64,000 bases of DNA, taken from sequence record OR513085.1; one strand, 5' to 3'. Below the pieces are notes generated by a model. That model was not told the origin of the DNA, made no database searches, and saw nothing but the letters and a program-made list of their open reading frames with translations. Position numbers and translations under genes: made by a program. Shown one piece after another: positions 2,676 to 63,910 of this stretch. Position 1 is the first letter of the stretch. Each line of letters begins with the position of its first letter.

Positions 2676-3083
2676 ATGGCTGATGAAACAAAGAAGCAGG
2701 ATGCTGTAACTACAGCGCCAAAGAAAAAACCAGGCAGAAAGCCTTACTTAACAAAAGAGGAATTAAAGGCAGAGTTGGCAGTGTCACATGAACGTGGACA
2801 GCTAACAAACAAAAATGCTAAAATGTTCCAGCTTATGGTTAGCAAAATTCAGTCAAGAGTTTTTTATAAAGACCCTGCAGCAAAAGAAGACTGTGCAGCG
2901 CATGCGATGTATATCGTAGCTAAAAATTGGCATAAGTTCGACATGACTCAGGACAATCCATTTGGATTCTTTACAACTACAATTATCAATGCATTATCTG
3001 CAGGATGGAATGCTAATGAACGTAGGCCAATTCACATACCATTGGATGCATTCATTAACAACGACGCAGATAAAGCTGAGTAG
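2676..3083 (+). CDS. gp55: T4 gp55-like late sigma factor
   Basis: YLTKEELKAEL...EDCAAHAMYIVAKNWHKFDMTQDNPFGFFTTTIINAL matches the gp55 pattern (FD...NPxxYxT...NAF). Confidence 0.75.
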   Translation: MADETKKQDAVTTAPKKKPGRKPYLTKEELKAELAVSHERGQLTNKNAKMFQLMVSKIQSRVFYKDPAAKEDCAAHAMYIVAKNWHKFDMTQDNPFGFFTTTIINALSAGWNANERRPIHIPLDAFINNDADKAE

Positions 3084-8357: not shown

Positions 8358-9164
8358 ATGAAAAACTTTTTCAGCTTTATCAACGAAGCAAATTCATTCA
8401 ATACAGACAACGGAAATCCTTTTAATGCAGGTGACATAGTTTATACAAAATCTGGTCGAATTAAAGGGGTAATTGCATCAGATTACGTAAGCAAATCATC
8501 TAACGGACTTTCAGTTTACGTCGACTACCTAGAACCTGGGTCATACAAAGGCGGCAAGAGTATGAAATTGCATTTAATTTCTGAACTTGTAGCATCTAGC
8601 GAAAAGAACATAGAAGGCAAAGAATTGGTGAAAAACTTCAAGCCTGGTGACTTAATAAAAATTAAAGCAACAGGAAATGTTGGCGAAATTATCGAACATG
8701 ACTTAGGCAAAAACAGAATTCAGTACAAAATTGTACAGGGCGAAAATATTACAAGACTAGATAATTTCGTTTCCGCATTTGGAATTGAACTTGTAGATGC
8801 TAAGAAAATGGCAGATGCTAAATTAGCCGAGCTTAAGGCTAACAAAGACCTTAACAAATTCTTTAAAATTTCAATGAACTGGGAATGCGAATTTACTTTG
8901 GAAAAGGCTGACGACAAAAAGCCAGGTAGGTTCTGGGTTAGAATTCAAACATTCGGAAAACGACTTTCTGAATATGAAGCTTACAAAACTGCAACTAACT
9001 TTGCGCCTCAGTCTAACAAAGAATATTCTGTTTCAGATTCGTATTACTTTGACACTAACGCATCTAAACCAACATCTTGGAAAGAACTTAAAGAAAAGTT
9101 TAGTGAAAGCGAATCAAATTCAGAAGTTTCTGGTAGAATTTACCGTTACTTAGACCTCAAATAA
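8358..9164 (+). CDS. Putative internal head protein with capsid-targeting leader and two KOW/SH3-like barrels
   Basis: MKNFFSFINE|A; FNAGDIVYTK..KGVI and FKPGDLIKIK..GEII repeats. Confidence 0.55.
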   Translation: MKNFFSFINEANSFNTDNGNPFNAGDIVYTKSGRIKGVIASDYVSKSSNGLSVYVDYLEPGSYKGGKSMKLHLISELVASSEKNIEGKELVKNFKPGDLIKIKATGNVGEIIEHDLGKNRIQYKIVQGENITRLDNFVSAFGIELVDAKKMADAKLAELKANKDLNKFFKISMNWECEFTLEKADDKKPGRFWVRIQTFGKRLSEYEAYKTATNFAPQSNKEYSVSDSYYFDTNASKPTSWKELKEKFSESESNSEVSGRIYRYLDLK

Positions 9165-10368: not shown

Positions 10369-12078
10369 ATGGCAGTAGAAAATTTTAACAACAACATAAA
10401 CGTTACTAAGCAGAACGACTTGATGCGTAAACGTATCTTCAAGGAGATGCAGAACAACACAACAAAGTCTGTTATTAACAAAATTTACAACTCTATTCAA
10501 GGTAACCAAACCACCATGGACAACATCGTCAATGAAGACGCCGTATCTCCTGGCAACTTGGCAGGCAAAGCTACACAAACAGTTTTCAATACTAAAGTAG
10601 CTTCTGTAGCCGATTGTATTGGTGCTGCCTCTGAAATGGAAATTGCAGATATCCTAGATCGTTTTGTCGATGAAATGATTGTTTACGGAACTGGCAACAA
10701 CAGATTCTGTGAACCTGACTATTCGTCAATTGAGCAATTGGATATTACTGACAATGCTAAGCAGGAACTAAAAGACGAAATTGACAAAGCGTTTTCAAGA
10801 GTTTATAGATTGCTTAAGTACTCACGTCATAACATTCGTAGCGTTGAGGACGTTTCTGCATTAGCAAAACGTTGGCTAACTATTGGTAAGCTAGCATACT
10901 TTATTGTCTATGACAACTTAGAAAAGCCTACAAAAATTCTAGACATTATCCCAATTGACTTACGTAGATACACGCTAATTAAGCATGATATCCCAGTTAA
11001 AGTTAATAATGGGAAATATACATCGACTAAGACAGTTACTTATTGGACACTTCACGAAAACACTGGTAACGACCAGTACGGAAGAACAATGTATAACTCG
11101 GCAATGACTAACTTTACTTACTCGTTAGATAACGCACAGTTCCAAAAAGACATTTTTACTGACATGGAAATTACTATGGCAGACTGGTCTAGAGTAGAAT
11201 TTGAACTATCTAACGTACAGTCATATACTGCCATGCTACTTAGACCTTTCAACATTCTACGTATCATGGAACGTACAAAAATAATCTGGGCTGTAATGAA
11301 CTCACGTTACAGAACAATGTATAAAATTCCTGTTGCTAACTTAGGTAAGCAAAGAGGTAAGCAGGTTATTTCAATGGTAATGAACGACTACAAGGAAAAT
11401 GTAGAATTCAATTCGACTACCGGACAAATTTCAGTCAACGGACAGCCGGACTTACCTTTTAACAAGGACATTTGGATGGGCCGAGGTAATGCAGGTGAAC
11501 CTGAAATTATACCACTTGGCGGTAATGGTCCTGATATGTCAGACACTTCTACATTAACTCCGTTCTACCAAAAGTTACAAAAAGCGTCTAAAATGCCAAT
11601 GTCTAGATTCGAGGAAAACAATGCAGTTTACTGGGATATTAACCCAATGGCAATTTCTCTTGAAGAACGTAGATTTGGTAAATACAACGAAAAAGTTCAG
11701 CAACAATTTATCGAACCTCTACGTAAATGTACGTACTACCAGCTACTTATAGCTAATCCAAAATATATTGGCGACACTAACATTTATGATGCTCTTAACA
11801 TTCGTTGCAACAGATACAATGAACTTGAGCAAATGATGGAACTTGAAACTTTGAACAAGAAAATCGAACTTATCGGAGATGTTAAAGACAAAATGAAAAT
11901 TTACGATAAGGATGGCAACGAAGTTCCACTTATATCTACTAGATTGCTACTTGACAAATACTTACCGCTTACTAAGGCAGAAAAAGAACTTAACGAGAAG
12001 TACATCAAGGAAGAGCAGGAGAATATTAAGAAGGCTATACAAAATCAAACATATTCTGGTGAAAACCAAGGTTATTAG
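10369..12078 (+). CDS. gp20: Portal protein (T4 gp20)
   Basis: ILDRFVDEMIV, LRIMERTKIIW..RTMYKIPVANL, FNSTTGQI, DIWMGR, LQKASKMPMSRF, ISLEERRFGK. Confidence 0.92.
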   Translation: MAVENFNNNINVTKQNDLMRKRIFKEMQNNTTKSVINKIYNSIQGNQTTMDNIVNEDAVSPGNLAGKATQTVFNTKVASVADCIGAASEMEIADILDRFVDEMIVYGTGNNRFCEPDYSSIEQLDITDNAKQELKDEIDKAFSRVYRLLKYSRHNIRSVEDVSALAKRWLTIGKLAYFIVYDNLEKPTKILDIIPIDLRRYTLIKHDIPVKVNNGKYTSTKTVTYWTLHENTGNDQYGRTMYNSAMTNFTYSLDNAQFQKDIFTDMEITMADWSRVEFELSNVQSYTAMLLRPFNILRIMERTKIIWAVMNSRYRTMYKIPVANLGKQRGKQVISMVMNDYKENVEFNSTTGQISVNGQPDLPFNKDIWMGRGNAGEPEIIPLGGNGPDMSDTSTLTPFYQKLQKASKMPMSRFEENNAVYWDINPMAISLEERRFGKYNEKVQQQFIEPLRKCTYYQLLIANPKYIGDTNIYDALNIRCNRYNELEQMMELETLNKKIELIGDVKDKMKIYDKDGNEVPLISTRLLLDKYLPLTKAEKELNEKYIKEEQENIKKAIQNQTYSGENQGY

Positions 12079-12147: not shown

Positions 12148-12396
12148 ATGAAAACATTTACATACTTTATTAATGAAGCTAAACGAAACGAAAATTTACG
12201 TAATGACATTTATGCTAAATTGACTGCAGGCTCATCTAAAGTACCGCTGACAGTTATACAAAGATTAACTGCAATGATACAAAATAAAAAAGTATCGTTG
12301 ACTGCAATTTTATCATTTGCTGAAAGTTTCATAAAAGACAAAGACTTACTTAATGAAATTGTTAGCATGCTAAATTCAAATTTCGTTAATGAATAA
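12148..12396 (+). CDS. Small prohead core/internal protein (position of T4 gp67/68)
   Basis: MKTFTYFINE|A leader; lies between portal and protease. Confidence 0.55.
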   Translation: MKTFTYFINEAKRNENLRNDIYAKLTAGSSKVPLTVIQRLTAMIQNKKVSLTAILSFAESFIKDKDLLNEIVSMLNSNFVNE

Positions 12397-12439: not shown

Positions 12440-15400
12440 ATGAACAACACACAGAACTTAGGTTTTCTTGTAGAAAATCATGTTTCGCACAACGTCTTCC
12501 AAAGAATTGACGAATCTGTTGCGTTACCAGATGGAGTTCTGATGCTTATGCGAGGTACGTTTATTCCTATGGACGTTCCTGGCGAGAATGGCAGATGGTA
12601 CACTTACGCTGACTATGCACCGCAGGTAGAAATGTTACTACCTAAAATTGCTAGGAAAGAATGTTTTGGAGAAATTGAACATCCTCAAAGAGTTCACGTT
12701 CCTTACGACTTAGCGTCTCACAGAGTTGAGGAAGTTTACTACGACAAAGCATCAAATTCTTGGATTGGTACTATCGCAATTTTAGATACTGACAAAGGTA
12801 GAGCAGTTTACGATATCGCAAAAACTGGAGCTCCTATATACGTTTCGCATAGAGCGTTAGGTTCAGTTGACCAAAAGACTGGCAAAGGAATTCTACTTAA
12901 ATTGCTTACTTGGGACGTAACTTCCAATCCATCGTTTAAGGCTGCAGAATTTAGCAGAGCCGAACTTATCAATGAATCCGCTTACGTTTACTTGCCGCTA
13001 GAAGACGAAATGCTTAACGAATGCTATGCTGAGCTTGGCTTAACGTCAGAAGACTTCATCAACGAATCTACTGTTACTCTAACTCAAAGCGAATTGTTAG
13101 CTATGCTTAATGAAGCGTCTAACAATGCTAACGCTATAGCTACCGAACGTTACGCAAAGCTTTTAGCTAACGCAATTAATGTAAATGCCAATTTTGTTAA
13201 TGAACATATTGCAATTCAGCCATCACAAGTTATCGACGTCGTTAAGAAAATTAAAGAACGTCCTTGGATGACTGCCCAGGAAATGCTTGACCCGGAATTC
13301 AAATTTAACGACGAATATATGCATCCGCTAGATTTAGTTGCTGCAATGCAAGCTCTGGCTTCAGAAGGCATGCTATACGACGAAGATGCTCCTGGTTTTG
13401 ATGAAAACGAACCTCAAATAGCATCAGTTATTGCAGTACCTCAATTAGAAGAAGTAATTGCTAATTGGCAAATGGAGCAAGATGCTTTAGCTGCGGATGT
13501 TATTGCTGCCGAAGAAGCCAAAGCTGCTAAGTTTTCAAATGAATCTGTAGACTTCGTAAATAATTTTGCATCTGAATATGCTTTTGTAGGTCCTTATGAA
13601 GCTACAAAACAAGCAGTAGCTGCATTAACTGGCAAAGCTATTGGTGATCTTTCTGAATCTGTTGAAGCTAGAATTTCCGACATAATGGTTAACGCTAAAC
13701 CTGGTAATGCTGAGGAAATTATAAATGCTTTAGTTGACGCTGAACTATATGTTAGTGAAGCTTTAGAAGCAGCTAGCAATCCTAATAAGAACAAAGAAAT
13801 GCTACAAATTTTAGTTAACTTTACAAAATATGTTGAACTAAAATTACATGTATTCCACCACAATACTAAAAGCTACGCACAACATAAAGCATTCGATACA
13901 GCATACAAAAGCTTCCAAAAGCTAACTGATAGCATAATTGAACAAGCTATGGGATATAGCGGCGAACGCTATGATACTATAGACCTTTCAGTTTCTATGC
14001 CAATTGTATATGCTGACGATTCTGGAGCTGATGTTATAGAATCACTTTATTCGTTGTCAAAAGTTATTAAGCTAATTTCTGAGGATTTGATTGCCGGAGG
14101 ACTTTCTACGTTATCTGACGATGTTTCAGGAATTGGTGCGCAACTTTCGTACTTAATGACATTAAACGAATCTCAGCTAGATGAATTTGCTAATGAAGGT
14201 GTTTCTAGCTGGCTTAAAGATAAGTGGTCTAGGCTTAAACGTTGGGCCAACTCAAACATAGATGCTACTGTAACTATTGATGGAGTAGACTATATTATTG
14301 ATGACATTCAGGAAGACGACAAAGTAATTTGCAGAGATTCCGATGGCAAAGCCAAAGAATTTACCTTTGACGAGGTTTATAAATACTTAAACGAAAACAA
14401 CATATTACAACCACAAACAATGGCAAATACACACATTAACGAGGGCGTTGACGGAGCAAAAGCAAACGTTCTAGCTATTCTTTCCGGAGCAAAATTTGTA
14501 AGCTCGGTAGATAATGCAACAGATTATGACTATTCAATTGACGACGACGGACTTACTGCAGCTTCTGATGAAGTGGCATTAGATATCCTAGCCGTTCTTA
14601 AAAATAACGCAGTTACTGCTTCTGTAGATGGAGCTAAAGTAGCTATAACTTTCGGAATTGTTCCTGCAGTAGTTACTGACCAAATTAACGAATCTTTAGA
14701 AGACTTCTGTAACAAAATGCTTAGCTATGCTAACGAATCAGGTAATGCAGGAAACATTATTAACGCAGCAATGGCTATTCAAAATGCTAATGGCGTTATA
14801 AACATTAACGAATCTTACGTTACGTATTGCGAACAAATTGTAGAATATGCTAACGAATCAGGAGTAGCTTCTGACATTGCTAACGCTGGATCGCTATTAC
14901 AAAATGCTTTAGAAGCAAAATTTGCTAATGAGGCCGAAGAAACTGCAGCAATCGTATCTGATGCTACAATTGCCGGAGATGTTGCTGTAGATGGAGGTAA
15001 TGAAAGATATGCAGTAGGATGCGTATTCTCAGTAGATTCTCAAAACTTCACAGTTGCTGAATTTGACGGAACTAACGTAGTAACTACTACTGGTGAAACT
15101 TTCACTGTAGCTGAACTAAAGAAAGACGATGACGCACCAATTCCTGGAACTGATGATGCATTAGAACCTGGTGCTCCTGTAGAAGGCGACAATACTGTTG
15201 ATATGACTGTAACTCCTGTAGGAACTATCGGTTCAATCAACGAATCTTATAGCAAAACTAACAAGCCAAAAATTGGTGATAAAGTTACTTTCATCATGGA
15301 TAACCCAGACGGTCCTGGATTTGGTAAAGTTAAAAATGGTGAAAAAGTTACTGCTACTGTAGCTGATTTTGGTGACTGGGAAGGTGACGGTTATTCTCTT

Positions 15401-16063
15401 GACGTAGTACTTACTGGAGTTTCTGAGGAATACAACGTTTACACTACTGAACTTATCAATGAAGCTGCTGAGGACTTAACTGACTTACCTTCTGGAACTG
15501 CAGAGAACATTGACCATAAAGTTATCGAGGATGGCAATGCTACTGACATTCCTAGCAACCTCGACAAACCACTAGAAAACAAATTAGCTGAGGACTTCCT
15601 TGCTAGAGCTGATAAAGGCGTAACATTTGAACAATGGATTGTTGACCAAGCTTCTGCTAACGAATTAGTTACTCCTCAGTTAGTAATGACGGTTAAAACA
15701 ATTATTTCTGACATGGAAGTTAAGCAAATGATTAACGAATCTGCAGTACTAACCGCAGCATTTATTAACGAATCTGCAGAAGCTACTGAACAATCAGCTC
15801 ACTTAAAGCTTATTGGTGACCACATCGGACAATCTCACAAATACATGTTTGAACACTTGAACGAATCTGCAAAAGGAGTTCTAGTTGCTCAAGCTGAATT
15901 GTATAACTTGTCCAGCCAAAATATCCACGACTTCCTTGATACAAGAAACTGGGCACAAATCGCTAATACTACAATTAACGAATCAGTAGCTCAAATTTCT
16001 GCAAATATTCAACAAAATGACTGGAAATCTGCACTTAAAGCATCTTTCAGAGCAGGTAGATAG
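12440..16063 (+). CDS. gp21: Prohead protease (gp21 family) fused to a roughly 1030-aa acidic scaffold/cargo polyprotein
   Basis: GENGRWY, CFGEIEHP (His), VSHRALGS (Ser), WDVTSNPSF in the first 175 aa; about 20 xNE|S/A/G sites downstream. Confidence 0.88.
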   Translation: MNNTQNLGFLVENHVSHNVFQRIDESVALPDGVLMLMRGTFIPMDVPGENGRWYTYADYAPQVEMLLPKIARKECFGEIEHPQRVHVPYDLASHRVEEVYYDKASNSWIGTIAILDTDKGRAVYDIAKTGAPIYVSHRALGSVDQKTGKGILLKLLTWDVTSNPSFKAAEFSRAELINESAYVYLPLEDEMLNECYAELGLTSEDFINESTVTLTQSELLAMLNEASNNANAIATERYAKLLANAINVNANFVNEHIAIQPSQVIDVVKKIKERPWMTAQEMLDPEFKFNDEYMHPLDLVAAMQALASEGMLYDEDAPGFDENEPQIASVIAVPQLEEVIANWQMEQDALAADVIAAEEAKAAKFSNESVDFVNNFASEYAFVGPYEATKQAVAALTGKAIGDLSESVEARISDIMVNAKPGNAEEIINALVDAELYVSEALEAASNPNKNKEMLQILVNFTKYVELKLHVFHHNTKSYAQHKAFDTAYKSFQKLTDSIIEQAMGYSGERYDTIDLSVSMPIVYADDSGADVIESLYSLSKVIKLISEDLIAGGLSTLSDDVSGIGAQLSYLMTLNESQLDEFANEGVSSWLKDKWSRLKRWANSNIDATVTIDGVDYIIDDIQEDDKVICRDSDGKAKEFTFDEVYKYLNENNILQPQTMANTHINEGVDGAKANVLAILSGAKFVSSVDNATDYDYSIDDDGLTAASDEVALDILAVLKNNAVTASVDGAKVAITFGIVPAVVTDQINESLEDFCNKMLSYANESGNAGNIINAAMAIQNANGVININESYVTYCEQIVEYANESGVASDIANAGSLLQNALEAKFANEAEETAAIVSDATIAGDVAVDGGNERYAVGCVFSVDSQNFTVAEFDGTNVVTTTGETFTVAELKKDDDAPIPGTDDALEPGAPVEGDNTVDMTVTPVGTIGSINESYSKTNKPKIGDKVTFIMDNPDGPGFGKVKNGEKVTATVADFGDWEGDGYSLDVVLTGVSEEYNVYTTELINEAAEDLTDLPSGTAENIDHKVIEDGNATDIPSNLDKPLENKLAEDFLARADKGVTFEQWIVDQASANELVTPQLVMTVKTIISDMEVKQMINESAVLTAAFINESAEATEQSAHLKLIGDHIGQSHKYMFEHLNESAKGVLVAQAELYNLSSQNIHDFLDTRNWAQIANTTINESVAQISANIQQNDWKSALKASFRAGR

Positions 16064-16278: not shown

Positions 16279-18000
16279 ATGCAAACATTATTTCCAAACG
16301 CCAACCAAGTTGGCAACATGGTAGACAGATGGTCTGAATTTATTAACGAAGCAGCTCCTAAAGGTGGTAGTACTCTATCTGATGGTAAGAGAGCAATGAT
16401 CGCTCAGGTTGCAGAATTCCACGCTCATGGCAAGGATATCGCAACTGGAGGATTCTTGAACGAATCTATCATCGGTACAAATATTATGTCAAACGGTGCT
16501 AACATGAACGGAATGGGTTCTATTACTCTTCCTACTAACGTTAAAGCTGGATTTACCCAATTCAACCAACAAACTCCTGGTTCTGGTGATGTTCCTGTGA
16601 CTGTGCTTTCAATGGCAATGTCAGTAGCTGCGACTACTATCGGTTTTGATTTGTTACCAACTATTCCAATTTATCAGCCTGCAGTAATGCTACAGTACGT
16701 AGATTACCTTTACGGTGGTGGTAAACTTGATTCGGCAGATAACCCTCCTTTGATCGTTATGGCTAGAATTGAGGAACTTAGAGGACACCTTGATCTTAGA
16801 CAAGGTTCTAAAGTTGCTATCCACTCTGTTGCAGGTGATGCTACTTCTGGATGGACATTTGAGTTCGTTGGATTTACAAGATTAGAAGGATATGCAACTT
16901 TAAAGGTTGACACTTTCGCTAACAAAGTAACTCCTGCATTAGGTTCTCTTGCTTTAGTTGAATTTACTATTGACGGTGGTGCTCCTGTAACAGTTGCTCC
17001 TGCTGGAAATCCTAAATTGGAATTAGCTAGAGCGGTTGAAAACCACTTCTCAATGTTCACAGCTTACGGAAACCTTGATGGTGAAGGAGTTGATAGAGCT
17101 GAAGCTGAAAAAGGTACAAGATCAGTTATCGAAATGAGAACTTACTCTAAAGTAGTAAGAACTAAAGAACATGCTGTAGAAGGTATCGTTTCAAGACAAC
17201 AAGCTAGAGATATCAAAGCTATGGGTCTTGATGCATTCCCTCAATTGAAAGTTGCAATGCAGAATGACATCTCTCAGTCATTAAACAAGGAAATCCTTAT
17301 GAGAATGAGACAGATGGGTGTTTCTACACACTTAATGTTACAGAAATCTCAAGGAGTTAACTTGAACACTTACATTGACTTACCAGCTAACACTTCTAAG
17401 CCAATTGTACAGTTCAAAACTCAGCCTCTTATCGACAAGAACGGAGTTAACCAAACTGCTAACTTCTTACCAGCTCCTAACTCTGAAACTAACTCAGCTG
17501 CTGAAAACCTTTGGACTAGACAAAGAAGAGTAACTTCTACCATCATCACTGGTGCTGCTCTAGTAGGACAAGCTTCTTTCCACGGTTCTGCTGACGCTGT
17601 AGTTGTTAACTCTCAGTTAATGGCAGCTATTAAGGAATCTGTTGGTTACCAGCCAGCTACTATTGAGAACAAAATCTCTCAGTCTACAAAGGCTCTTTAT
17701 TATGCAGGTACTATTTCTGACGTTGCAGTTTACTGTGACCCTAACATGAAATGGAACGATACTACTGCTATCTTGGCTAGAACAGGTAAAACTGATGACG
17801 GTCTTGATATTAACCAATTAGCAGAAGGGTTAGTTTTTCTTCCGTATGTCTTGAGTTCGGAAGTTGAAATTATCACTGAAGGAACTATGGGTCCTAAAGC
17901 GTTAATCGAAACTGTTTATGCTATCGGAGAAATTGGTATCAGACCAGAACTTGCTTACTTAACTATCGTATTCGATAACGGATTTGGTAGATGGGCATAA
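16279..18000 (+). CDS. gp23: Major capsid protein (T4 gp23 family)
   Basis: PGSGD..VLSMAMSVAATTIGFDLLPTIP, VVVNSQL, YAGTI, EGLVFLPY, EGTMGPK; follows the protease; FLNE|S at residue 62. Confidence 0.92.
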   Translation: MQTLFPNANQVGNMVDRWSEFINEAAPKGGSTLSDGKRAMIAQVAEFHAHGKDIATGGFLNESIIGTNIMSNGANMNGMGSITLPTNVKAGFTQFNQQTPGSGDVPVTVLSMAMSVAATTIGFDLLPTIPIYQPAVMLQYVDYLYGGGKLDSADNPPLIVMARIEELRGHLDLRQGSKVAIHSVAGDATSGWTFEFVGFTRLEGYATLKVDTFANKVTPALGSLALVEFTIDGGAPVTVAPAGNPKLELARAVENHFSMFTAYGNLDGEGVDRAEAEKGTRSVIEMRTYSKVVRTKEHAVEGIVSRQQARDIKAMGLDAFPQLKVAMQNDISQSLNKEILMRMRQMGVSTHLMLQKSQGVNLNTYIDLPANTSKPIVQFKTQPLIDKNGVNQTANFLPAPNSETNSAAENLWTRQRRVTSTIITGAALVGQASFHGSADAVVVNSQLMAAIKESVGYQPATIENKISQSTKALYYAGTISDVAVYCDPNMKWNDTTAILARTGKTDDGLDINQLAEGLVFLPYVLSSEVEIITEGTMGPKALIETVYAIGEIGIRPELAYLTIVFDNGFGRWA

Positions 18001-18128: not shown

Positions 18129-19559
18129 ATGATTAAACGTAAAAGACAAACATATAATGACGTTATAGCCGATTGCAAAAAAGCTCATGGTAATTATTAT
18201 GACTATGTAGATACGTCTGCTACTTGGTATAAGAAAACTGACAAACTTAGAATTATATGTCCTGTTCATGGCGAATTTGAACAATCTGGCAAAAACCATA
18301 GTAAAGGCCAAGGCTGCACAAAATGCAAAAAGAACATACAATCGTATGACCAAATTATAACTAAAGTCCTGGAAATTCATGCGTCCAGAGGCTATATTTA
18401 CGAAGACACTTCGGCAGAATTTACAGTTTCAACATCGTCATTCCTTAAAGCTAATTGTCCTAAGCATGGCGAATTTGAAGTCAGGGCGCATGCACATAGT
18501 GTAGGTGTTTTAGGATGTCAAGGATGCTATACGGATGATTTAGTTGATCGTCAAAGATATAGTAAAGATGAAATGCATAGCATTTGTAAAGTTATTTTAG
18601 CTAAACGTAAATGTACAATTTTAGACATAACTTTTTATGTCGATAAAGCAAATTCAAATTTTATAATAAATTGCCCTAAGCATGGCAATTTTGAAAAGAA
18701 TGCTTATCAAATTTTATTAAAACAAGGTTGCCCTAATTGCGTAGGCTATAATTCCTCAAAGGCTGAAACATTTTTGAGAGATCATTTAGTTGGCCAAGGT
18801 ATTGCAGATGCTGTAGGTCGTAAGCGTTTTAGACATCATGAAACTAATAAACTTTACGAAATAGACGTGCAATCGCCAAGCTTAAAAATTGGAATAGAAT
18901 TTAACGGAATACATTGGCATAGAGGCGAAGTATTCAAGCATAAACATATGCTAAAAACTACAAGCCTAGACTATATGAACTGGCAGTTAATTCATATTTT
19001 TGAGGATGAATATCATGCAAAATTTAATGCAGTAATGTCAATGATTAATCATAAGCACGGAGTTACTAAACAAAAAATTCATGCCAGGAAAACTAAGACT
19101 GCTTTAATTGACGAAGACACTTACGTACAATTCTGCAACGAAAACTGCATACAAATTTTTGACAAGCTGGCATTTAATTACGTAGGGCTATATTTAGCAG
19201 AAACATTAGTTGGCGTAATTGCGTATAACGTAGATACTAAAGCTAACGTAGACATCATAAATATTGCGATGTTAAACAATCATAATATAATTGGCGGAGT
19301 CGGCAAATTAGTAGCTTATGTAGAACGTTCGGAACGTCCTGCATCAATAACCGCTACGCTAAACAGGCAATTCTCAACTAAGCATAACGTTTTTGCAAAA
19401 CTAGGCTTTGATTTTGTTGAATATACAGAACAGAATTTTATGTACAGTATACATAGCAGTCCTAGGATTTTGCCAGAACATACGTCTATTGAACATCAAA
19501 TAGATTCTAATAAAGTCTGGGATGTCGGTAACATTATTATGAAAAAAGTGTTCAAATAA
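18129..19559 (+). mobile_element. Free-standing Hef-like homing endonuclease with three CPxHG zinc-ribbon repeats
   Basis: CPVHGEF..GQGCTKC x3; EIDV..KIGIEFNGIHWH (PD-(D/E)XK, Vsr-like); KIHARK..; VWDVG. Confidence 0.7.
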
Positions 19560-24877: not shown

Positions 24878-25789
24878 ATGGCAAAAACATTTGAACTTAT
24901 AAAAGACGGTAGTATAAAACATGCAGGCCGTACACTTTACAAAATAAAAGCTTTAGTAGACATTCCAAATCATGGCGTAAATGCCGGAGATATTGGTGGA
25001 TGGGTAGAATCTGAAAATAACCTACAAAGCGATGAAGCATGGATTGGCGATGCAGCCATGGTTTATGGTGACGCTGTAGTTTCAGAAAAGGCTTTAGTTA
25101 CTGAATTTGCACAAGTTTCAGGATTTGCTGAAATTAAAGGCTTTGCAAAAGTACAAGGTAATGCCAAAATTTCAGACAAAGCCAGAATTTGGGGAAGCTG
25201 TACTGTTGAAGACAACGTTACGATAGGAGGCTTTACATTCATTGCAGACTTTGCAATAGTACGAGGATTTGCTAAAATTGCAGGAGAAATTCAAATTATT
25301 GAAAACGCTAGAATTTGGGGTCATGTAAAAATTTATGCTAACGCTATAATTAGAGGTCATGCACAAATTTATGGTGATGCTGCCATTTATGGAGGCACTA
25401 TTTCAGGTAATACGGTAGTTTGTGACTATGCAAAAATAGGTTCTCATGTTATGCTAAGCTATGGAATTTTTAAAGGTAGGGCTGTAGTTACTACACCTAG
25501 TGACTACGCAGCAATTGCTAACATAGGCTCAAGGAATGGAACTACTATAGCATATAAAACTAACGTACTTGCTCAAAGACCATCACAAATTGAAATTATT
25601 TGCGGATGTTTCACAGGTGACTTACAACAATTCTACAATATTGTACGTAGACAATATGGCGGGCATAACGTAGGTATTGCGGGTAGACGTTACTACAAAG
25701 AATACATGGCAGCTATACAACTTATTGAAGCCAAATTCTCTGTGAAAGTAAAGCGTAAAGGTAGATTTTTGGCATGGTTAAGATCATGA
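24878..25789 (+). CDS. Left-handed beta-helix (hexapeptide repeat) phage protein
   Basis: GRTLYKIKAL..GDIGGWVESENNL followed by many AxVxGxA hexapeptide repeats. Confidence 0.8.
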   Translation: MAKTFELIKDGSIKHAGRTLYKIKALVDIPNHGVNAGDIGGWVESENNLQSDEAWIGDAAMVYGDAVVSEKALVTEFAQVSGFAEIKGFAKVQGNAKISDKARIWGSCTVEDNVTIGGFTFIADFAIVRGFAKIAGEIQIIENARIWGHVKIYANAIIRGHAQIYGDAAIYGGTISGNTVVCDYAKIGSHVMLSYGIFKGRAVVTTPSDYAAIANIGSRNGTTIAYKTNVLAQRPSQIEIICGCFTGDLQQFYNIVRRQYGGHNVGIAGRRYYKEYMAAIQLIEAKFSVKVKRKGRFLAWLRS

Positions 25790-33230: not shown

Positions 33231-36200
33231 ATGGCAAAATTTACAAAACTTGCTGGAGAAGTTGCTAAGCTTTACGACGGTAAAGTTACTGGCAGCATTA
33301 TCAAATTTGACAGTGAGGACGACTTATTTAAAGCAGCTGATGAAATTGCAGATCAGTTCGCATTTACAATGGACCAGGATAAACTGACCATCGAGTTCCT
33401 TAACGAAAACATTGACATAAAATTCCTTAAGCAATTTGCTTCTGCAATGGGAGTTTCTCAATTCACTAACGAATCAGTTGACAAACTTACGAAGCAAATA
33501 GGAATTAGCCTTAACGAGGCTGAAGTTGATACCGTTACTACGTTACTAAACAAAGTAGAAAGTCCTGAATATCCTGACGTTGCTAAAGTTGCGGCTGACC
33601 CTATGCAACAAATTGCTGATACTATTACAAACTCTGCAGCTACAGGTGCTACGTTAGATATTGTAGACGGTGAAAATTCTGCTAAACAAATTGTTATCAG
33701 AACTGATGATAAACTTATTGCAGCTACACCAACTGACATCGTAGCAATCAACGAATCAGCTTACGTACACTATGGAATGCATCAGCTTAACGAAAATGAA
33801 TACAATGCACTTAAAGCTTTGGAAGATGTTAATGCTAGACGTAGATTCCTTACAAGCATGGGTATCATGGACTTAGATGCCGATTCAATTTCAAAGAACT
33901 TGGAGTTGCTTAAACCTCTTCATCCTGACATGGATGCTAATGGGTTGCTTCCGCTAAATGAAGCTAACGTAACAATTATTAACGTAAGCAATGCTTTTGC
34001 TAACGAAGCCAGTAACGCTCTAGCTAATGTAGCTAATCTTTATGCTAAGTTTGTTAATGAAAACAATTCATGGACAGTTAAGTCTTACGATGCTGCTGAT
34101 GTTAAAGCTACTTTAGTTTCTGCAGGAATTCCTGCAAACGAAATTTTTATGAATGAGTCTAAAGACATGGACATCTACAACTTACAATCTAAAGTTGCAT
34201 TATTCTGTAAAAAGTCAGGACTTTCAGGAGCCGATGTACAAAAAGCTTTACTACTTGTTAACCTAGAAGCTAAAGAAGCTAAACCTAATTTTAGCAAATA
34301 CGTAAACATAAAGGACTCAATGCTAAACGAATCTGCCGATGCACAGGATGCTGAGGAAATGTTTGAACGTAAAAACAAAGCATATGCTAAAATGATTAGC
34401 AAAGACGGCCTAGCTGCTGAGCTTACTGAATTCCTAGCTTCTTTTGGAGAAAATGCTAAAGTTCCTGAGGATGGTTTAGTTGGTGAGTATGGTGAACTTT
34501 CTGCAGACTTGCAAGAAGGAATCAACAAATTCATGGAAGAGCGTGGTTACTTTGCTAATGAAAGTACTAATTGGACGCTTGATAAAAAATCAAAAGGTGA
34601 ATATAACGAATGGCATATTACTGGCGATGCACTAAACAAAGTAAAATCACGTGATGAAATTTTTGATGTATTACCTGAACTTAAAGGAATCTATAAAACA
34701 CTAATTGATTCTAAAAATGGACTAAAGTACAGCGACCGTGTTAAAGTTGGCAGCATTACAGTTACTGGTGATGATATGGGCGATATTTTAAATTTTCTTA
34801 AAGGTAACGGTTCACTAAATGAATCTGTTGATGCTAACGAGGAAATTGAAAGTGTATACAAATTTGAATCTATAAAAGACATTGAGGTTGCTGCTGCAGC
34901 TAAAGGTTATGTTTGCAAAGGACATTCAGGACAATCCGAATCTTCTGACAAGTATAAATTTGATATTCTAGCTAAAGGTGGCAAAAAATGTGCAATGGGT
35001 ATTTATGACAAAACTAAAAAAATTGCAATACTGGATGTTAACGATGAACATAAAGGTACCGCTTTACTAGAAGCTAAAATGATTAATGAAAGTTTCACTA
35101 ATGAATCTGCAGGCATTGAAAACTTATTCGCATCTATGGGAGCTACATTCAACAAAGAGTTACGTACAGATGGCACTTACAAATACCAAGTTACTGGCTT
35201 AGTAGGTTATGCTAACGAGGCTACTGAAGTACCAAACACTGCCGACCTCATCGCATTTGAAATTCTTAAATTGTACGGAAACTTCAAAGAAGCTACAAGG
35301 CTATCACGTTCAGTAGTTAAACAAGCGTTACGTAATGTTATTGATACATTGAAAGTTGATGACTCTTGGTTAACTGACGAATCTAAATTTATTTCGCTTT
35401 TTGAAGCTATTGATACTATGAGAGTAGACTTTGGCCCAATTGACGAATCTTCAAATTTGCCAACTAAAACAAGCGAATTAAAAATTAACGCATATGTAGC
35501 ATTTAAAAATAATGGTGCAAGAATATTTGGTAAAATTTCAGGCATAAAAGGTGACGAAGTTTCAGTAAAACTAACAAACGGCAAACAAATGCTAGTTGAT
35601 GCTAAAGATGTAATTTTAGGTCTTGAAAATTACGTTAATGAATCAATACCTCAGCAAGAAGCTAAGATTGCCGGAACTAAAGCTAAGATTGCTGAAATTA
35701 AATCAGAGGCTAAGGCTGCTTCGGCTAACGCATCTTCCAAAATTTCCACTGAAAAGGCTAAGTTAGTAAATGCCAGAGCTACTTTGAAAAACCTTAAAAA
35801 GTCAAAGTCGTTAAATGAGTCTAAAGCGCCTCAAGGAGTTGGAGGAAATGTTTATGTAGTACCAAACTCGTCTTTCCAAAATCCTTGGCTAACACATAAG
35901 CTTGAAACTTCACTAGGTATGCGAGGATATCAATTTGCTAACCAATTCAAGTCTGACATCGTAAACGCCGACATTATGGTTGACTATTATGTTGCAAAAG
36001 ACGACAAAGTTAGTGAAGTTTGTATGGACATGGAAGGTACTTCAAAACCTCAAAAGACTGAAATTATAGCTACACCAGTTTCAATTTACATTAACGAAAA
36101 CAATGTACTTTGTTTCAATGAAAATCCAATTCCTACAGAAATTGCAGAAAACGGGCAGATTGGTTCAGTAGCACAATTCAAGGAATATGCTAAATACATT

Positions 36201-36365
36201 CTGAGTGGTGGCATTCCTGGTGCAGATTCTGCATGCGAAGAGGGCCCAGTTACTCAGGAAGATATTGCAAAAATTGACAGTATTTGTGATGCTTGCGGTG
36301 AAAACTATGGTGCTATGATGGGTAAATTTGATGATTATCTTAGCCAGAAAGCTACTGTTAACTAA
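33231..36365 (+). CDS. 1044-aa late protein with about 18 xNE|S/A/N sites; probable internal head polyprotein
   Basis: Late promoter; motif density matches the protease scaffold. Confidence 0.7.
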   Translation: MAKFTKLAGEVAKLYDGKVTGSIIKFDSEDDLFKAADEIADQFAFTMDQDKLTIEFLNENIDIKFLKQFASAMGVSQFTNESVDKLTKQIGISLNEAEVDTVTTLLNKVESPEYPDVAKVAADPMQQIADTITNSAATGATLDIVDGENSAKQIVIRTDDKLIAATPTDIVAINESAYVHYGMHQLNENEYNALKALEDVNARRRFLTSMGIMDLDADSISKNLELLKPLHPDMDANGLLPLNEANVTIINVSNAFANEASNALANVANLYAKFVNENNSWTVKSYDAADVKATLVSAGIPANEIFMNESKDMDIYNLQSKVALFCKKSGLSGADVQKALLLVNLEAKEAKPNFSKYVNIKDSMLNESADAQDAEEMFERKNKAYAKMISKDGLAAELTEFLASFGENAKVPEDGLVGEYGELSADLQEGINKFMEERGYFANESTNWTLDKKSKGEYNEWHITGDALNKVKSRDEIFDVLPELKGIYKTLIDSKNGLKYSDRVKVGSITVTGDDMGDILNFLKGNGSLNESVDANEEIESVYKFESIKDIEVAAAAKGYVCKGHSGQSESSDKYKFDILAKGGKKCAMGIYDKTKKIAILDVNDEHKGTALLEAKMINESFTNESAGIENLFASMGATFNKELRTDGTYKYQVTGLVGYANEATEVPNTADLIAFEILKLYGNFKEATRLSRSVVKQALRNVIDTLKVDDSWLTDESKFISLFEAIDTMRVDFGPIDESSNLPTKTSELKINAYVAFKNNGARIFGKISGIKGDEVSVKLTNGKQMLVDAKDVILGLENYVNESIPQQEAKIAGTKAKIAEIKSEAKAASANASSKISTEKAKLVNARATLKNLKKSKSLNESKAPQGVGGNVYVVPNSSFQNPWLTHKLETSLGMRGYQFANQFKSDIVNADIMVDYYVAKDDKVSEVCMDMEGTSKPQKTEIIATPVSIYINENNVLCFNENPIPTEIAENGQIGSVAQFKEYAKYILSGGIPGADSACEEGPVTQEDIAKIDSICDACGENYGAMMGKFDDYLSQKATVN

Positions 36366-36598: not shown

Positions 36599-37900
36599 AT
36601 GTCAAATTACATAAATGAAGCAATGTCACTTAATGGCAAAGTGGCATATAACGAAGGCCAAGTAGCTTTCAAGACTAACACTGCATTCTCCATCATACAA
36701 CATTTAGCTTGGCAATACAACGACACTTACGTTGGTAGCGTTAAGACAGTTAAGCTACCTTACGAAATAAAAGCCAAAGCAGTTAAGCAACTTTCGTTAA
36801 ATGGAACGCCTTGCATTTTCAGAGAACTTGGCGAGCTTGAAACATTCAAATCTGTAGGTGAATTTGACTTCCTACAAATGGTTTATATGTTCACTGATAA
36901 ACCTGAATTACTACAATACATCGATCAATCTTACGTAGAATTTGGTGTTTTCTTACAAAATGGAAATTGGTGGTTTGTCGAAAAGCAAAACAATGCTAAG
37001 CTTTTTGAAGAGATTGACGAACTTAACGTAGGCTATTACAACCTAGACTTACCAACTGCTAAGCTACCAAAAACAATTTCAATGATTGATTCTGTTAGCC
37101 AAGGCAAAACCGCATTACGTACGTACGCAAAGGATAACGCTCTAACTGATTTTGTTATGTCAACGTTTACTACTCCAATGGCAGTGCAACTTAATGCGTA
37201 TCCTTCAATAGCTAAATTTGCATCGTTTGTACCAGATGCTAACGAATTTACTAATCAACTAATTGCGGTAGTTTTAAAAGAAGAAACTGAAGTTCCTTTC
37301 TTGCTAGACAAAACTTCTGAGCATATGATATTGTTAGTTTGTGTAGAGGGCGTAAACAAATGGTTCAAAATTTCGGCATCCGACGTTCTTGCAGCAATTA
37401 GTAAAAACCAGCAAAACTTTTTTGTAGATAGCGTTAAGAACTCACTAGAATCTAGTAGACTTAATGCAGGACTAAAATCAGAGGACTTATATGCTGCAAT
37501 TAAACGTTTACGTGCAGTAGCATTATTCAACAATTTGCTACAAGATACAGGCTTCTCAGGCTACTATTACGTTAAGAACAACTCACATACAATAAAGGCT
37601 GATGCATTTAACAAATTCAGTGTTAATTCTCAAGGCTATGTTAATCAGATTTTTAACGACAAGGATTTAGTACTTTACAAAGACACTATAATTTCATATA
37701 GCGCCGATCTTAAAGCTGGCATAGTAGTTATTGCATATCCTGGATTAAACCATACTTGCTACATAACTTCAATTGACCAACTACCAGAATTGCAAAATGA
37801 ATTCCTGGATGGCAATGCTAAATTGGACACCGTAGTTTCAATTTCCGACATTTACTTCAAGGACAACGGTTCCAAGAAGGGCGACAGTGGTAAAAAATAA
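36599..37900 (+). CDS. Late protein with MSNYINE|A leader
   Basis: 433-aa ORF; late box AATACATA 36572-79. Confidence 0.65.
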   Translation: MSNYINEAMSLNGKVAYNEGQVAFKTNTAFSIIQHLAWQYNDTYVGSVKTVKLPYEIKAKAVKQLSLNGTPCIFRELGELETFKSVGEFDFLQMVYMFTDKPELLQYIDQSYVEFGVFLQNGNWWFVEKQNNAKLFEEIDELNVGYYNLDLPTAKLPKTISMIDSVSQGKTALRTYAKDNALTDFVMSTFTTPMAVQLNAYPSIAKFASFVPDANEFTNQLIAVVLKEETEVPFLLDKTSEHMILLVCVEGVNKWFKISASDVLAAISKNQQNFFVDSVKNSLESSRLNAGLKSEDLYAAIKRLRAVALFNNLLQDTGFSGYYYVKNNSHTIKADAFNKFSVNSQGYVNQIFNDKDLVLYKDTIISYSADLKAGIVVIAYPGLNHTCYITSIDQLPELQNEFLDGNAKLDTVVSISDIYFKDNGSKKGDSGKK

Positions 37901-63233: not shown

Positions 63234-63275
63234 TTCCCAAACGTGAAAACATTTGGGAAATTTTGTTTAAATTTG
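63234..63275 (+). promoter_or_regulatory. Early-type promoter with its -33 core inverted between 8-bp inverted repeats
   Basis: TTCCCAAA-CGTGAAAACA-TTTGGGAA, 8 nt, TAAATTTG; late box CATAAATA 63289-96. Confidence 0.6.
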
Positions 63276-63310
63276 TATATAAACTAAACATAAATAAACC
63301 AAACAACAAC

Positions 63311-63910
63311 ATGAAAAACTTCTTTCAGTTTATAAATGAATCCATAAAATCGGATAATGTAGACTATTCAAAAAATGTAAAGCTTACTAATGCGGCGTTA
63401 CAAGATAAAAATGTACTTAAATTCGTTGCTAACGTAATATCTTTGTACAAACTTGATTGTAGCGTAGAGGAATTTATTAAGCAATCAGTATTCAGTATTT
63501 CAGATGCTAAACGACAATTCAAAGTAAAAGCTAAATCAAAAGCCGGCAAAGCTATTGAAGTTACTATGATTGATTCTACGCAATACGAATACACTTCTGC
63601 TAGTCCAAGCGTGCCATTTGGAGAATACGACACTGCTAAGCATACTAAAGGCAAACTAGTAAATGTTACTTCATCAAATTATGCTAATGAAGTTAATGAT
63701 GGCGACACTGTACTTTGCGGAACTACTATAGCACCACAAAGCCAAGTTACTTTAGCTACTAGACTTGAACCAGATTTACGTACAGTAGTTGACAAATATG
63801 CCGATAGTAAAGAAAAATCTGTACGTATAACTAAAAACAAATATCGTAATGAACCAGGCCGAGATGATGAGGTTATGGACATTAGCATTATTACTGCAGT
63901 AGTAAAATAA
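63311..63910 (+). CDS. Putative internal head protein with leader MKNFFQFINE|S
   Basis: ATG 63311; leader nearly identical to that of 8358. Confidence 0.6.
   Translation: MKNFFQFINESIKSDNVDYSKNVKLTNAALQDKNVLKFVANVISLYKLDCSVEEFIKQSVFSISDAKRQFKVKAKSKAGKAIEVTMIDSTQYEYTSASPSVPFGEYDTAKHTKGKLVNVTSSNYANEVNDGDTVLCGTTIAPQSQVTLATRLEPDLRTVVDKYADSKEKSVRITKNKYRNEPGRDDEVMDISIITAVVK

Follow-up and report, generated by a model that had tools for sequence, protein, structure and literature searches.

A DUF5856 domain resembling a shortened Dps four-helix bundle within the prohead protease polyprotein of Chryseobacterium phage MA9V-2

Introduction

Proteins with the domain DUF5856 (Pfam PF19174) are encoded by over 800 of the phages sequenced so far, among them T4, in which the family member is called RI.-1, and they have no assigned biochemistry. 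Here we describe a copy of this domain that lies inside the head protease polyprotein encoded by gene MA9V2_209 of Chryseobacterium phage MA9V-2 (sequence record OR513085.1), a jumbo phage with 218.5 kb of DNA. The analysed window is a stretch of 64,000 nucleotides from this record, and all coordinates given below are those of the window unless the record is named. The one phenotype reported for RI.-1, an effect on lysis inhibition, is modest (PMC2962797). RI.-1 and other stand-alone DUF5856 proteins share with the MA9V-2 domain the PF19174 match, 29-38% identity, four invariant residues and a C-terminal end of the Y-L-L-T-L type, but they are free proteins of 115-145 amino acids (aa) encoded in early or accessory regions and devoid of a targeting peptide, whereas the MA9V-2 copy is an internal module of a polyprotein. 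DUF5856 is named in no paper of the searchable literature, and the papers on the MA9V phages, of which MA9V-1 and MA9V-2 are under development against Panax root rot, contain nothing on the protease gene beyond its name.

Another group with which the domain has to be compared is the Dps proteins (HP-NAP, Listeria Dps/Fri and E. coli Dps). It resembles them in the predicted four-helix bundle and in the residues that occupy the aligned positions of their metal ligands, i.e. one His in helix A and His, Asp and Glu in helix B. It differs from them by a deletion of three residues between the His ligands, by the lack of a BC helix in the model and by the lack of a Pfam Ferritin match, and from the DNA-binding members of the group also by its acidity and the absence of a basic tail. 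In HP-NAP the residues H25, H37, D52 and E56 form the Dps ferroxidase centre, to which one subunit contributes the two histidines and its two-fold partner the Asp and the Glu (PMC4192664).

The location of the domain invites comparison with proteins packed into phage heads. The internal proteins of T4 (IPI-III, Alt) are non-structural cargo of the prohead core, freed by the gp21-type protease after Glu (PMC3012670), and the same is predicted for the domain of MA9V-2. In two relatives of this domain, P0008 and P0011, the N-terminus is a 10-residue peptide of the T4 type, whereas the cargo of MA9V-2 is fused to the protease/scaffold, has no short targeting peptide and is associated with a site that has a near-fixed Asn at P2. 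In P2 (gpO) and lambda (C/Nu3) protease and scaffold are products of a single gene, while in phiKZ and SPN3US a short motif ending in Glu serves for the trimming of many head proteins. MA9V-2 is similar to the former in that its protease and scaffold most likely come from one gene, and to the latter in its own short Glu-ending motif, at which cleavage is predicted. The protease-scaffold fusions named are not known to carry a ferritin-like module, and the MA9V-2 array also differs from them in its length of about 1000 aa, in having approximately 24 sites and in a cargo that varies between relatives.

Encapsulins bring a ferritin-superfamily protein (Flp/EncFtn cargo) into a shell of the HK97 fold by means of a targeting device. 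They contain no DNA inside, rely on C-terminal cargo-loading peptides and have di-iron sites of the intrasubunit or EncFtn type, whereas the shell of MA9V-2 is a true DNA-filled T4-type capsid and the predicted site is of the Dps type. As an analogy, the functional parallel between the MA9V-2 head and ferritin-loaded encapsulins is suggestive.

The pairing of PF19174 with PF03420 is already present in precomputed annotations, and their bare co-occurrence is not new. What appears to be new is that DUF5856, judging from sequence comparison, would be a miniature Dps (mini-Dps) with invariant ferroxidase ligands, that a clade within it seems to be targeted to capsids by three different devices, and that in the MA9V phages the domain rides on the protease/scaffold itself.

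Results and Discussion

Identity of the embedded domain

Translation of positions 13790-14175 (+) yields the peptide quoted in the initial annotation of the window, and it is in frame within an open reading frame (ORF) of 1207 aa. That annotation, made from the letters and their translations alone, had described a ferritin/Dps-like four-helix domain embedded in a protease polyprotein. Its location proved right, since the ORF is single, intact and contains Peptidase_S77, and the assignment of the fold was borne out by the hidden Markov model and structure searches that we ran. In Pfam the excised segment matched DUF5856 at aa 473-572 (polyprotein numbering is used throughout) with 53.5 bits and an E-value (E) of 5.3e-14, the gathering score being 34.6, and the whole 1207-aa polyprotein gave 48.7 bits with the same family. 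PHROG 858 also matched, with E 6.5e-15. The embedded copy of DUF5856 is the only one in the MA9V-2 genome.

The model of aa 451-577 built by AlphaFold2 (AF2) from an 81-sequence alignment is a four-helix bundle with a predicted local distance difference test score (pLDDT) of 95 and a predicted template-modelling score (pTM) of 0.88. When it was submitted to Foldseek, Dps and ferritin-like bundles ranked first, with template-modelling (TM) scores of 0.6-0.72 and a probability of about 1. A search of PDB with the single sequence of the domain put only Dps at the top, at E of about 0.1, while the 81-sequence DUF5856 profile found about 33 Dps entries before anything else, the best of them being HP-NAP (1ji4) with E 1.7e-6. 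The homology to Dps is thus significant only because the profile of 81 sequences was used and not the single one. Based on these data, the DUF5856 domain of the segment is genuine and folded, the fold being predicted by modelling to be a shortened Dps-type four-helix bundle.

Predicted metal site

The alignment of 81 DUF5856 members contains exactly four invariant columns, H473, H482, D497 and E501, and a second alignment agrees with this result. In the profile alignment these columns coincide with H25, H37, D52 and E56 of HP-NAP (1ji4), so that the DUF5856 domain, as far as aligned positions can tell, keeps all four ligands of the Dps ferroxidase centre and has a predicted metal site (codons are listed in Table 1). 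One can therefore speak of a putative mini-Dps, which is Dps-like at the level of the metal site but not necessarily a member of Dps proper. Conservation outside the four columns includes Y571, which is kept in at least 90% of the 81 members and belongs to a C-terminal motif that reads Y-L-M-T-L here. The embedded clade is further marked by an invariant H-H-N-T, against H-W-x-T in most DUF5856 and Dps proteins.

Two other modes of action were considered and rejected. A classical intrasubunit di-iron site of the ferritin, bacterioferritin or rubrerythrin kind, with its two E..ExxH motifs, does not fit, as ExxH occurs nowhere in the 128-residue segment and the conserved residues follow the Dps pattern. 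Coating of DNA by charge does not fit either, as the domain is acidic, with an isoelectric point (pI) of 4.9 for the segment and 4.5 for a 209-aa fragment described below, and has no basic DNA-binding tail. Since the domain is acidic, any protection of DNA would have to come from iron/peroxide chemistry and not from coating.

Putative maturation site and predicted released pieces

The MA9V-2 polyprotein contains 24 Asn-Glu dipeptides, whereas 7.1 would be expected. Eighteen of these 24 sites fit the strict pattern [LIVMAFS]-N-E-[SAG], which in 20,000 shuffles was found 0.79 times on average and 6 times at most, i.e. the motif is enriched approximately 23-fold. Position P3 is occupied by Ile, Leu or Ala in 20/24 sites and P1' by Ser, Ala or Gly in 18/24. 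The same motif is present in the gp23-type capsid protein at E24 (F-I-N-E↓A; the arrow marks the predicted cut) and E62 (F-L-N-E↓S), both of them before the start of the Gp23 fold at about aa 109. Proteases of the gp21 type cut their substrates after Glu in a short hydrophobic-x-E motif. T4 gp23 is known to have a propeptide of 65 residues that is removed, and the motifs at E24 and E62 predict a similar propeptide for the capsid protein of MA9V-2.

Four more ORFs, 12148-12396, 8358-9164, 63263-63910 and 36599-37900 (all +), start with a peptide of 7-10 residues that ends with F-I-N-E↓A/S or Y-I-N-E↓A, the peptide of 63263-63910 being counted from an internal Met. Their N-termini (e.g. M-K-x-F-x-x-F-I-N-E↓A) resemble the capsid-targeting sequences of T4 (background in PMC3012670). 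None of the four has a family match, and we regard them as candidate internal head proteins. The motif is also kept in MA9V-1 and in distant syntenic relatives. Because of its enrichment, its location at the propeptide positions of the gp23-type protein, its occurrence at other N-termini and its conservation in syntenic relatives, the hydrophobic-N-E↓S/A/G motif behaves as the site of the maturation protease in this lineage, and we infer that it is cleaved.

A second large acidic ORF was noticed at 33231-36365 (+). Its product of 1044 aa has 23 Asn-Glu dipeptides against 6.1 expected and 12 strict motifs, and no family match to it was found in Pfam or PHROG; it is probably a second polyprotein of head cargo or of ejected proteins.

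As to the limits of the domain, which the initial annotation had placed so that it ended exactly at a cleavage site, the two ends have to be treated separately. The C-terminal one coincides with the predicted protease site L-T-L-N-E577↓S578. Stand-alone relatives terminate 1-2 residues before the equivalent of E577, at ..Y-L-L-T-L-x-stop, so that a cut at E577 would recreate a near-native C-terminus. As to the N-terminal one, N451 is not located at any site, the nearest canonical site upstream is F-S-N-E368↓S, and no canonical site is present within 80 residues upstream of the domain in MA9V-2. At position 440 this phage has a degenerate Y-V-S-E440↓A, whereas MA9V-1, which is 93% identical to it in the domain region, has the canonical Y-A-N-E440↓A. 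The predicted 137-aa domain of MA9V-1 would thus be bracketed on both sides, while in MA9V-2 the same outcome would depend on Ser being tolerated at P2. For this reason the N-terminal boundary of the MA9V-2 product is uncertain and may give either a 209-aa or a 137-aa piece. The longer variant is the longest predicted piece of the polyprotein apart from the protease, and in its AF2 model aa 369-450 are helical at pLDDT 52-75, the DUF5856 part being above 90.

Distribution and origin of the module

With the domain alone a word-index homology search gave no match, and with the whole polyprotein it found only MA9V-1. An exhaustive search among 1.84 billion representatives revealed 112 relatives of the domain. 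The domain stands alone in 96/111 cluster representatives and is embedded in the remaining 15/111. Usually it makes up by itself a free protein of about 115-145 aa, and the MA9V-2 copy departs from this form in architecture, not in homology. Sequenced phages contributed 839 DUF5856 records, essentially all from T4-like phages, where the gene is rI.-1 and stands beside rI and tk. A narrow-alignment search of IMG/VR gave six loci with DUF5856, and it was a stand-alone gene in 6/6. The statement of the initial annotation that such domains are typically separate phage proteins, with an end of the ..Y-L-L-T-L-x kind, is therefore in line with what the relatives encode.

The closest representatives (35-44% identity) behave differently from this majority, as nearly all of them are embedded in metagenomic proteins of 317-1124 aa. 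In this near clade x-N-E↓S is found approximately 22-25 residues before H-H-N-T, and L-T-L-N-E↓ follows the domain, or a variant of it does so a few residues later. Several of the embedded proteins of the near clade start with a 10-residue peptide ending with I-N-E↓ or L-N-E↓. In P0008 and P0011 one DUF5856 domain stands behind a 10-residue peptide ending with I-T-E↓ or I-N-E↓, and P0009 and P0012 also begin with peptides of the targeting type. The gene of P0006 directly follows a T4-type portal gene, and that of P0014 follows a tail sheath gene. On the tree the embedded state is clustered, requiring 6 changes against 14.3 in shuffles, and 0/500 shuffles reached so low a number. The embedded proteins do not form one resolved clade, and the MA9V pair is on a long branch. 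One or a few captures of DUF5856 into larger proteins are both possible, and a single capture is not claimed.

Syntenic metagenomic relatives share the gene order DNA polymerase ... lysozyme, gp2, portal, protease polyprotein, capsid protein. Two of their polyproteins, L018:10001-15277 (1758 aa) and L019:10001-12112 (703 aa), have 26 and 12 strict sites, respectively, and DUF5856 is absent from both. In the relatives P0114 and P0118 a site is located just after the protease domain, at E188 and E190. The cargo content of the protease polyproteins is highly variable between related phages. Since closer relatives of the MA9V protease polyprotein do not have DUF5856, the domain is a dispensable piece of cargo, gained by an array whose content varies, which agrees with the earlier idea that a normally separate gene had been captured in frame.

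Two observations on other phages may be added. Entries A0A6J7XDU5, A0A6J7WPK9 and A0A6J7WIS1 of BFVD, annotated as 'Prohead protease' of uncultured Caudovirales (333, 763 and 432 aa), each include a bundle of the Dps kind at TM 0.70-0.74; judging by the structural match, they may hint at a recurring design, perhaps at an independent protease-Dps fusion. A 'ferritin' registered by mass spectrometry in the Vi01-like phage Sajous1 was considered as a DUF5856 protein and dropped, as the record that matched, STML-198, belongs to a T4-like Gelderlandvirus, from which no link to Sajous1 gp217 could be drawn.

Possible roles of the domain

The explanation that we favour, giving it a slightly better than even chance, is that the DUF5856 mini-Dps is a cargo of the protease/scaffold, which is freed from it, kept in the head, oxidises Fe(II) and shields the DNA. 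The domain would have been inserted as a cargo module into a gene supplying both a gp21-type protease and an acidic scaffold/core array, and the polyprotein would co-assemble into the prohead core. After assembly of the shell the protease would cut after Glu in the hydrophobic-N-E↓S/A/G motifs, so that the linkers would be shredded to short acidic peptides (9-44 aa) capable of leaving the head, while a few folded pieces would be freed. One of them would be the mini-Dps, whose end ..L-T-L-N-E nearly matches the C-terminus of stand-alone members. Being too large to leak out (15-23 kDa), it would be retained in the head together with the DNA. Two copies could pair as in Dps, and the metal sites created between the subunits would bind Fe(II) and oxidise it. 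Damage by Fenton chemistry and hydroxyl radicals would thereby be limited in the packed genome or, should the protein be ejected, in the entering one. The identity of the domain, its predicted fold, the conservation of ligands, the enrichment of the motif and the comparative pattern are established here, and from them we infer that the polyprotein is cleaved, that the domain stays in the head, oligomerises and acts on metal, and what its biological role would be. In its widest form, which seems to us possible but rather doubtful, the idea extends to the whole lineage (MA9V-1, MA9V-2 and uncultured aquatic relatives), which would load DNA-filled T4-type capsids with a miniature Dps and so obtain an encapsulin-like compartment detoxifying iron and peroxide. 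The loading routes suggested by the sequences would then be the 10-residue targeting peptide, a cargo polyprotein or the protease/scaffold fusion.

Several observations weigh against the favoured explanation. Foldseek E-values of the domain model were weak, 0.09 or worse; such values are usual for helical bundles, and reliance was therefore placed on the ranking, the TM-scores and the result of the sequence profile. PF00210 (Ferritin/Dps) gave no match to the segment at E <= 1, nor to any of the 81 members at E <= 0.01. Compared with Dps the domain is about 30 residues shorter, and where Dps has a short BC helix, in the long B-C loop at the two-fold interface, 21 residues of the AF2 model (58-78 of the segment) form a loop without a helix, so that formation of a dodecameric cage is not assured. 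The Trp that stands beside the first His ligand in Dps and in most DUF5856 proteins is replaced here by a second His (H474, 13859-13861), which could alter the metal site. With the upstream site degenerate, the MA9V-2 product may keep an 82-residue, poorly modelled extension. Neither a virion proteome nor biochemistry has been published for MA9V-1 or MA9V-2, and the only experiment on a member of the family, that with T4 RI.-1, points to the timing of lysis inhibition and not to iron (PMC2962797).

Some of the same data can be read in another way. The domain belongs to the one protein that must scaffold, encoded between the portal and capsid genes, and could serve there solely as a brick for dimerisation or oligomerisation, giving order to the scaffold core or fixing its copy number. 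The His/His/Asp/Glu set would then be structural (e.g. in a metal-bridged dimer) or vestigial and would take no part in redox chemistry or iron storage in the virion. The Dps metal site is located at the dimer interface and could simply join two polyproteins (PMC4192664), and the fact that related protease polyproteins work without the domain suits an interchangeable filler as well as a cargo. Nevertheless, such a structural function seems unlikely, as the ligands are invariant in 81/81 mostly stand-alone proteins encoded outside head modules, i.e. the chemistry is apparently kept for itself, as cut sites bracket the domain in relatives, suggesting that release is intended, and as some relatives deliver the domain alone behind a targeting peptide. 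A protein that stays within the intact polyprotein, or is degraded with it, because the N-E motifs or the flanks of the domain are left uncut, is highly improbable. Cleavage is indeed only predicted and the upstream flank of MA9V-2 has the gap in canonical sites mentioned above, but the approximately 23-fold enrichment of the motif, its presence at gp23-like propeptide positions, its conservation in MA9V-1 and distant syntenic relatives and, in embedded relatives of the near clade, its coincidence with the natural C-terminus of stand-alone proteins all argue for processing.

The T4-like 10-residue targeting peptides of the relatives are also compatible with an effector that travels with the DNA and, in the new host, sequesters iron, quenches peroxide, blunts a response dependent on iron or reactive oxygen species, or tunes the timing of lysis. 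T4 internal proteins delivered in this manner have host defences as their targets once they are ejected (PMC3012670), overproduction of T4 RI.-1 prolonged lysis inhibition (PMC2962797), and stand-alone homologues are expressed intracellularly from non-structural gene regions. However, a Dps-like oligomer must dissociate or unfold in order to pass the tail, the domain of MA9V-2 has no rI/rIII-type context, and RI.-1 homologues were found also in phages without lysis-inhibition genes, as stated by the authors who described RaK2 (PMC3622015); taken together, these points make an ejected effector quite unlikely.

If the idea is true in its widest form, in which the whole lineage loads its DNA-filled capsids with a miniature Dps, no ferritin-superfamily cargo would have been shown in a true virus capsid before, phage heads and encapsulins would be linked by function, and a biochemical role would be assigned to DUF5856 and to T4 RI.-1. 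Even as they stand, the invariant ligands provide a testable hypothesis for the whole family. Three putative routes into the capsid suggest selection for protection of DNA from iron and peroxide, or for an iron-handling protein delivered with the genome. The question bears on how phages survive outside the host and on how long therapeutic and biocontrol phages can be stored, as well as on the relation of phage capsids to encapsulins. The strict hydrophobic-N-E↓S site combined with a variable cargo array may also be taken as a natural template for loading of foreign proteins into capsids.

Gene neighbourhood and other features of the window

The gene of the polyprotein corresponds to positions 166979-170602 of OR513085.1 at 100% identity and is labelled in GenBank as 'prohead core protein serine protease'. 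Peptidase_S77 was found in the product at aa 37-148 with 27.3 bits against the Pfam cut-off of 27, and the PHROGs family phrog_207 (head maturation protease) matched it with E 5.5e-26. NCBIfam has a model for neither the S77 protease domain nor the DUF5856 domain. The order of genes is T4-like, with a gp20-type portal before the polyprotein and a gp23-type capsid protein after it (Table 1), and a separate scaffold gene is absent from the interval between the portal and capsid genes. Since there is no such gene and the protein itself is large and acidic (131.6 kDa, pI 4.3), the 1207-aa polyprotein is most likely protease and scaffold/core in one. The basic peptide left after its last site is possibly a tail by which the scaffold docks to the shell.

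Table 1. Coordinates of the polyprotein gene, its neighbours, the embedded domain and the predicted sites and pieces in the window (residues in polyprotein numbering, except for the capsid protein)
Feature	Position	Strand	Details
T4 gp20-type portal gene, upstream neighbour	10369..12078	+	Pfam Portal_T4 E 4e-56
Head protease/scaffold polyprotein gene MA9V2_209 (scaffold role most likely)	12440..16063	+	1207 aa, 131.6 kDa, pI 4.3; one intact ORF
T4 gp21-type prohead protease domain, aa 1-179	12440..12976	+	Ends L-I-N-E179↓S
S366-N-E368↓S369 (F-S-N-E368↓S), nearest upstream canonical site	13535..13546	+	From the site map
Predicted released fragment S369-E577	13544..14170	+	209 aa, 22.8 kDa, pI 4.5; if N-E sites alone are cut
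Alternative predicted released fragment A441-E577	13760..14170	+	137 aa; if Y-V-S-E440↓A is cut
DUF5856 putative mini-Dps four-helix bundle, aa 451-577	13790..14170	+	Predicted helices aa 452-475, 479-507, 529-550, 553-577
H473 codon, helix A, aligned with HP-NAP His25	13856..13858	+	Invariant 81/81; alignment to 1ji4
H482 codon, helix B, aligned with HP-NAP His37	13883..13885	+	Invariant 81/81; alignment to 1ji4
D497 codon, helix B, aligned with HP-NAP Asp52	13928..13930	+	Invariant 81/81; alignment to 1ji4
E501 codon, aligned with HP-NAP Glu56	13940..13942	+	Invariant 81/81; alignment to 1ji4
L575-N-E577↓S578, predicted protease site at domain C-terminus	14162..14173	+	Near-clade embedded relatives end alike
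Basic C-terminal 26-aa peptide of polyprotein, after last site	15983..16060	+	pI 11 vs pI 4.3 overall
T4 gp23-type major capsid protein gene, downstream neighbour	16279..18000	+	Pfam Gp23 match from aa 109

Other parts of the polyprotein also have a modular look. Pieces of 66-80 aa between sites at 14198-14395 and 15005-15463 (+) appear by eye as small beta-rich modules (G-D-K-V ... V-T/V patterns), and about 140 extra residues in the polyprotein of MA9V-1 (P0002, aa ~1012-1144) look like further beta-rich modules between sites; the array evidently grows through module gain. Directly downstream of the major capsid gene a gene resembling HNH/homing endonucleases is located at 18129-19559 (+) and matches phrog_559 with E 4.7e-51. 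GenBank labels of two other genes of the window are an LpxD-like UDP-3-O-acylglucosamine N-acyltransferase at 24878-25789 (+) and a sigma-70 region 2 protein at 2676-3083 (+).

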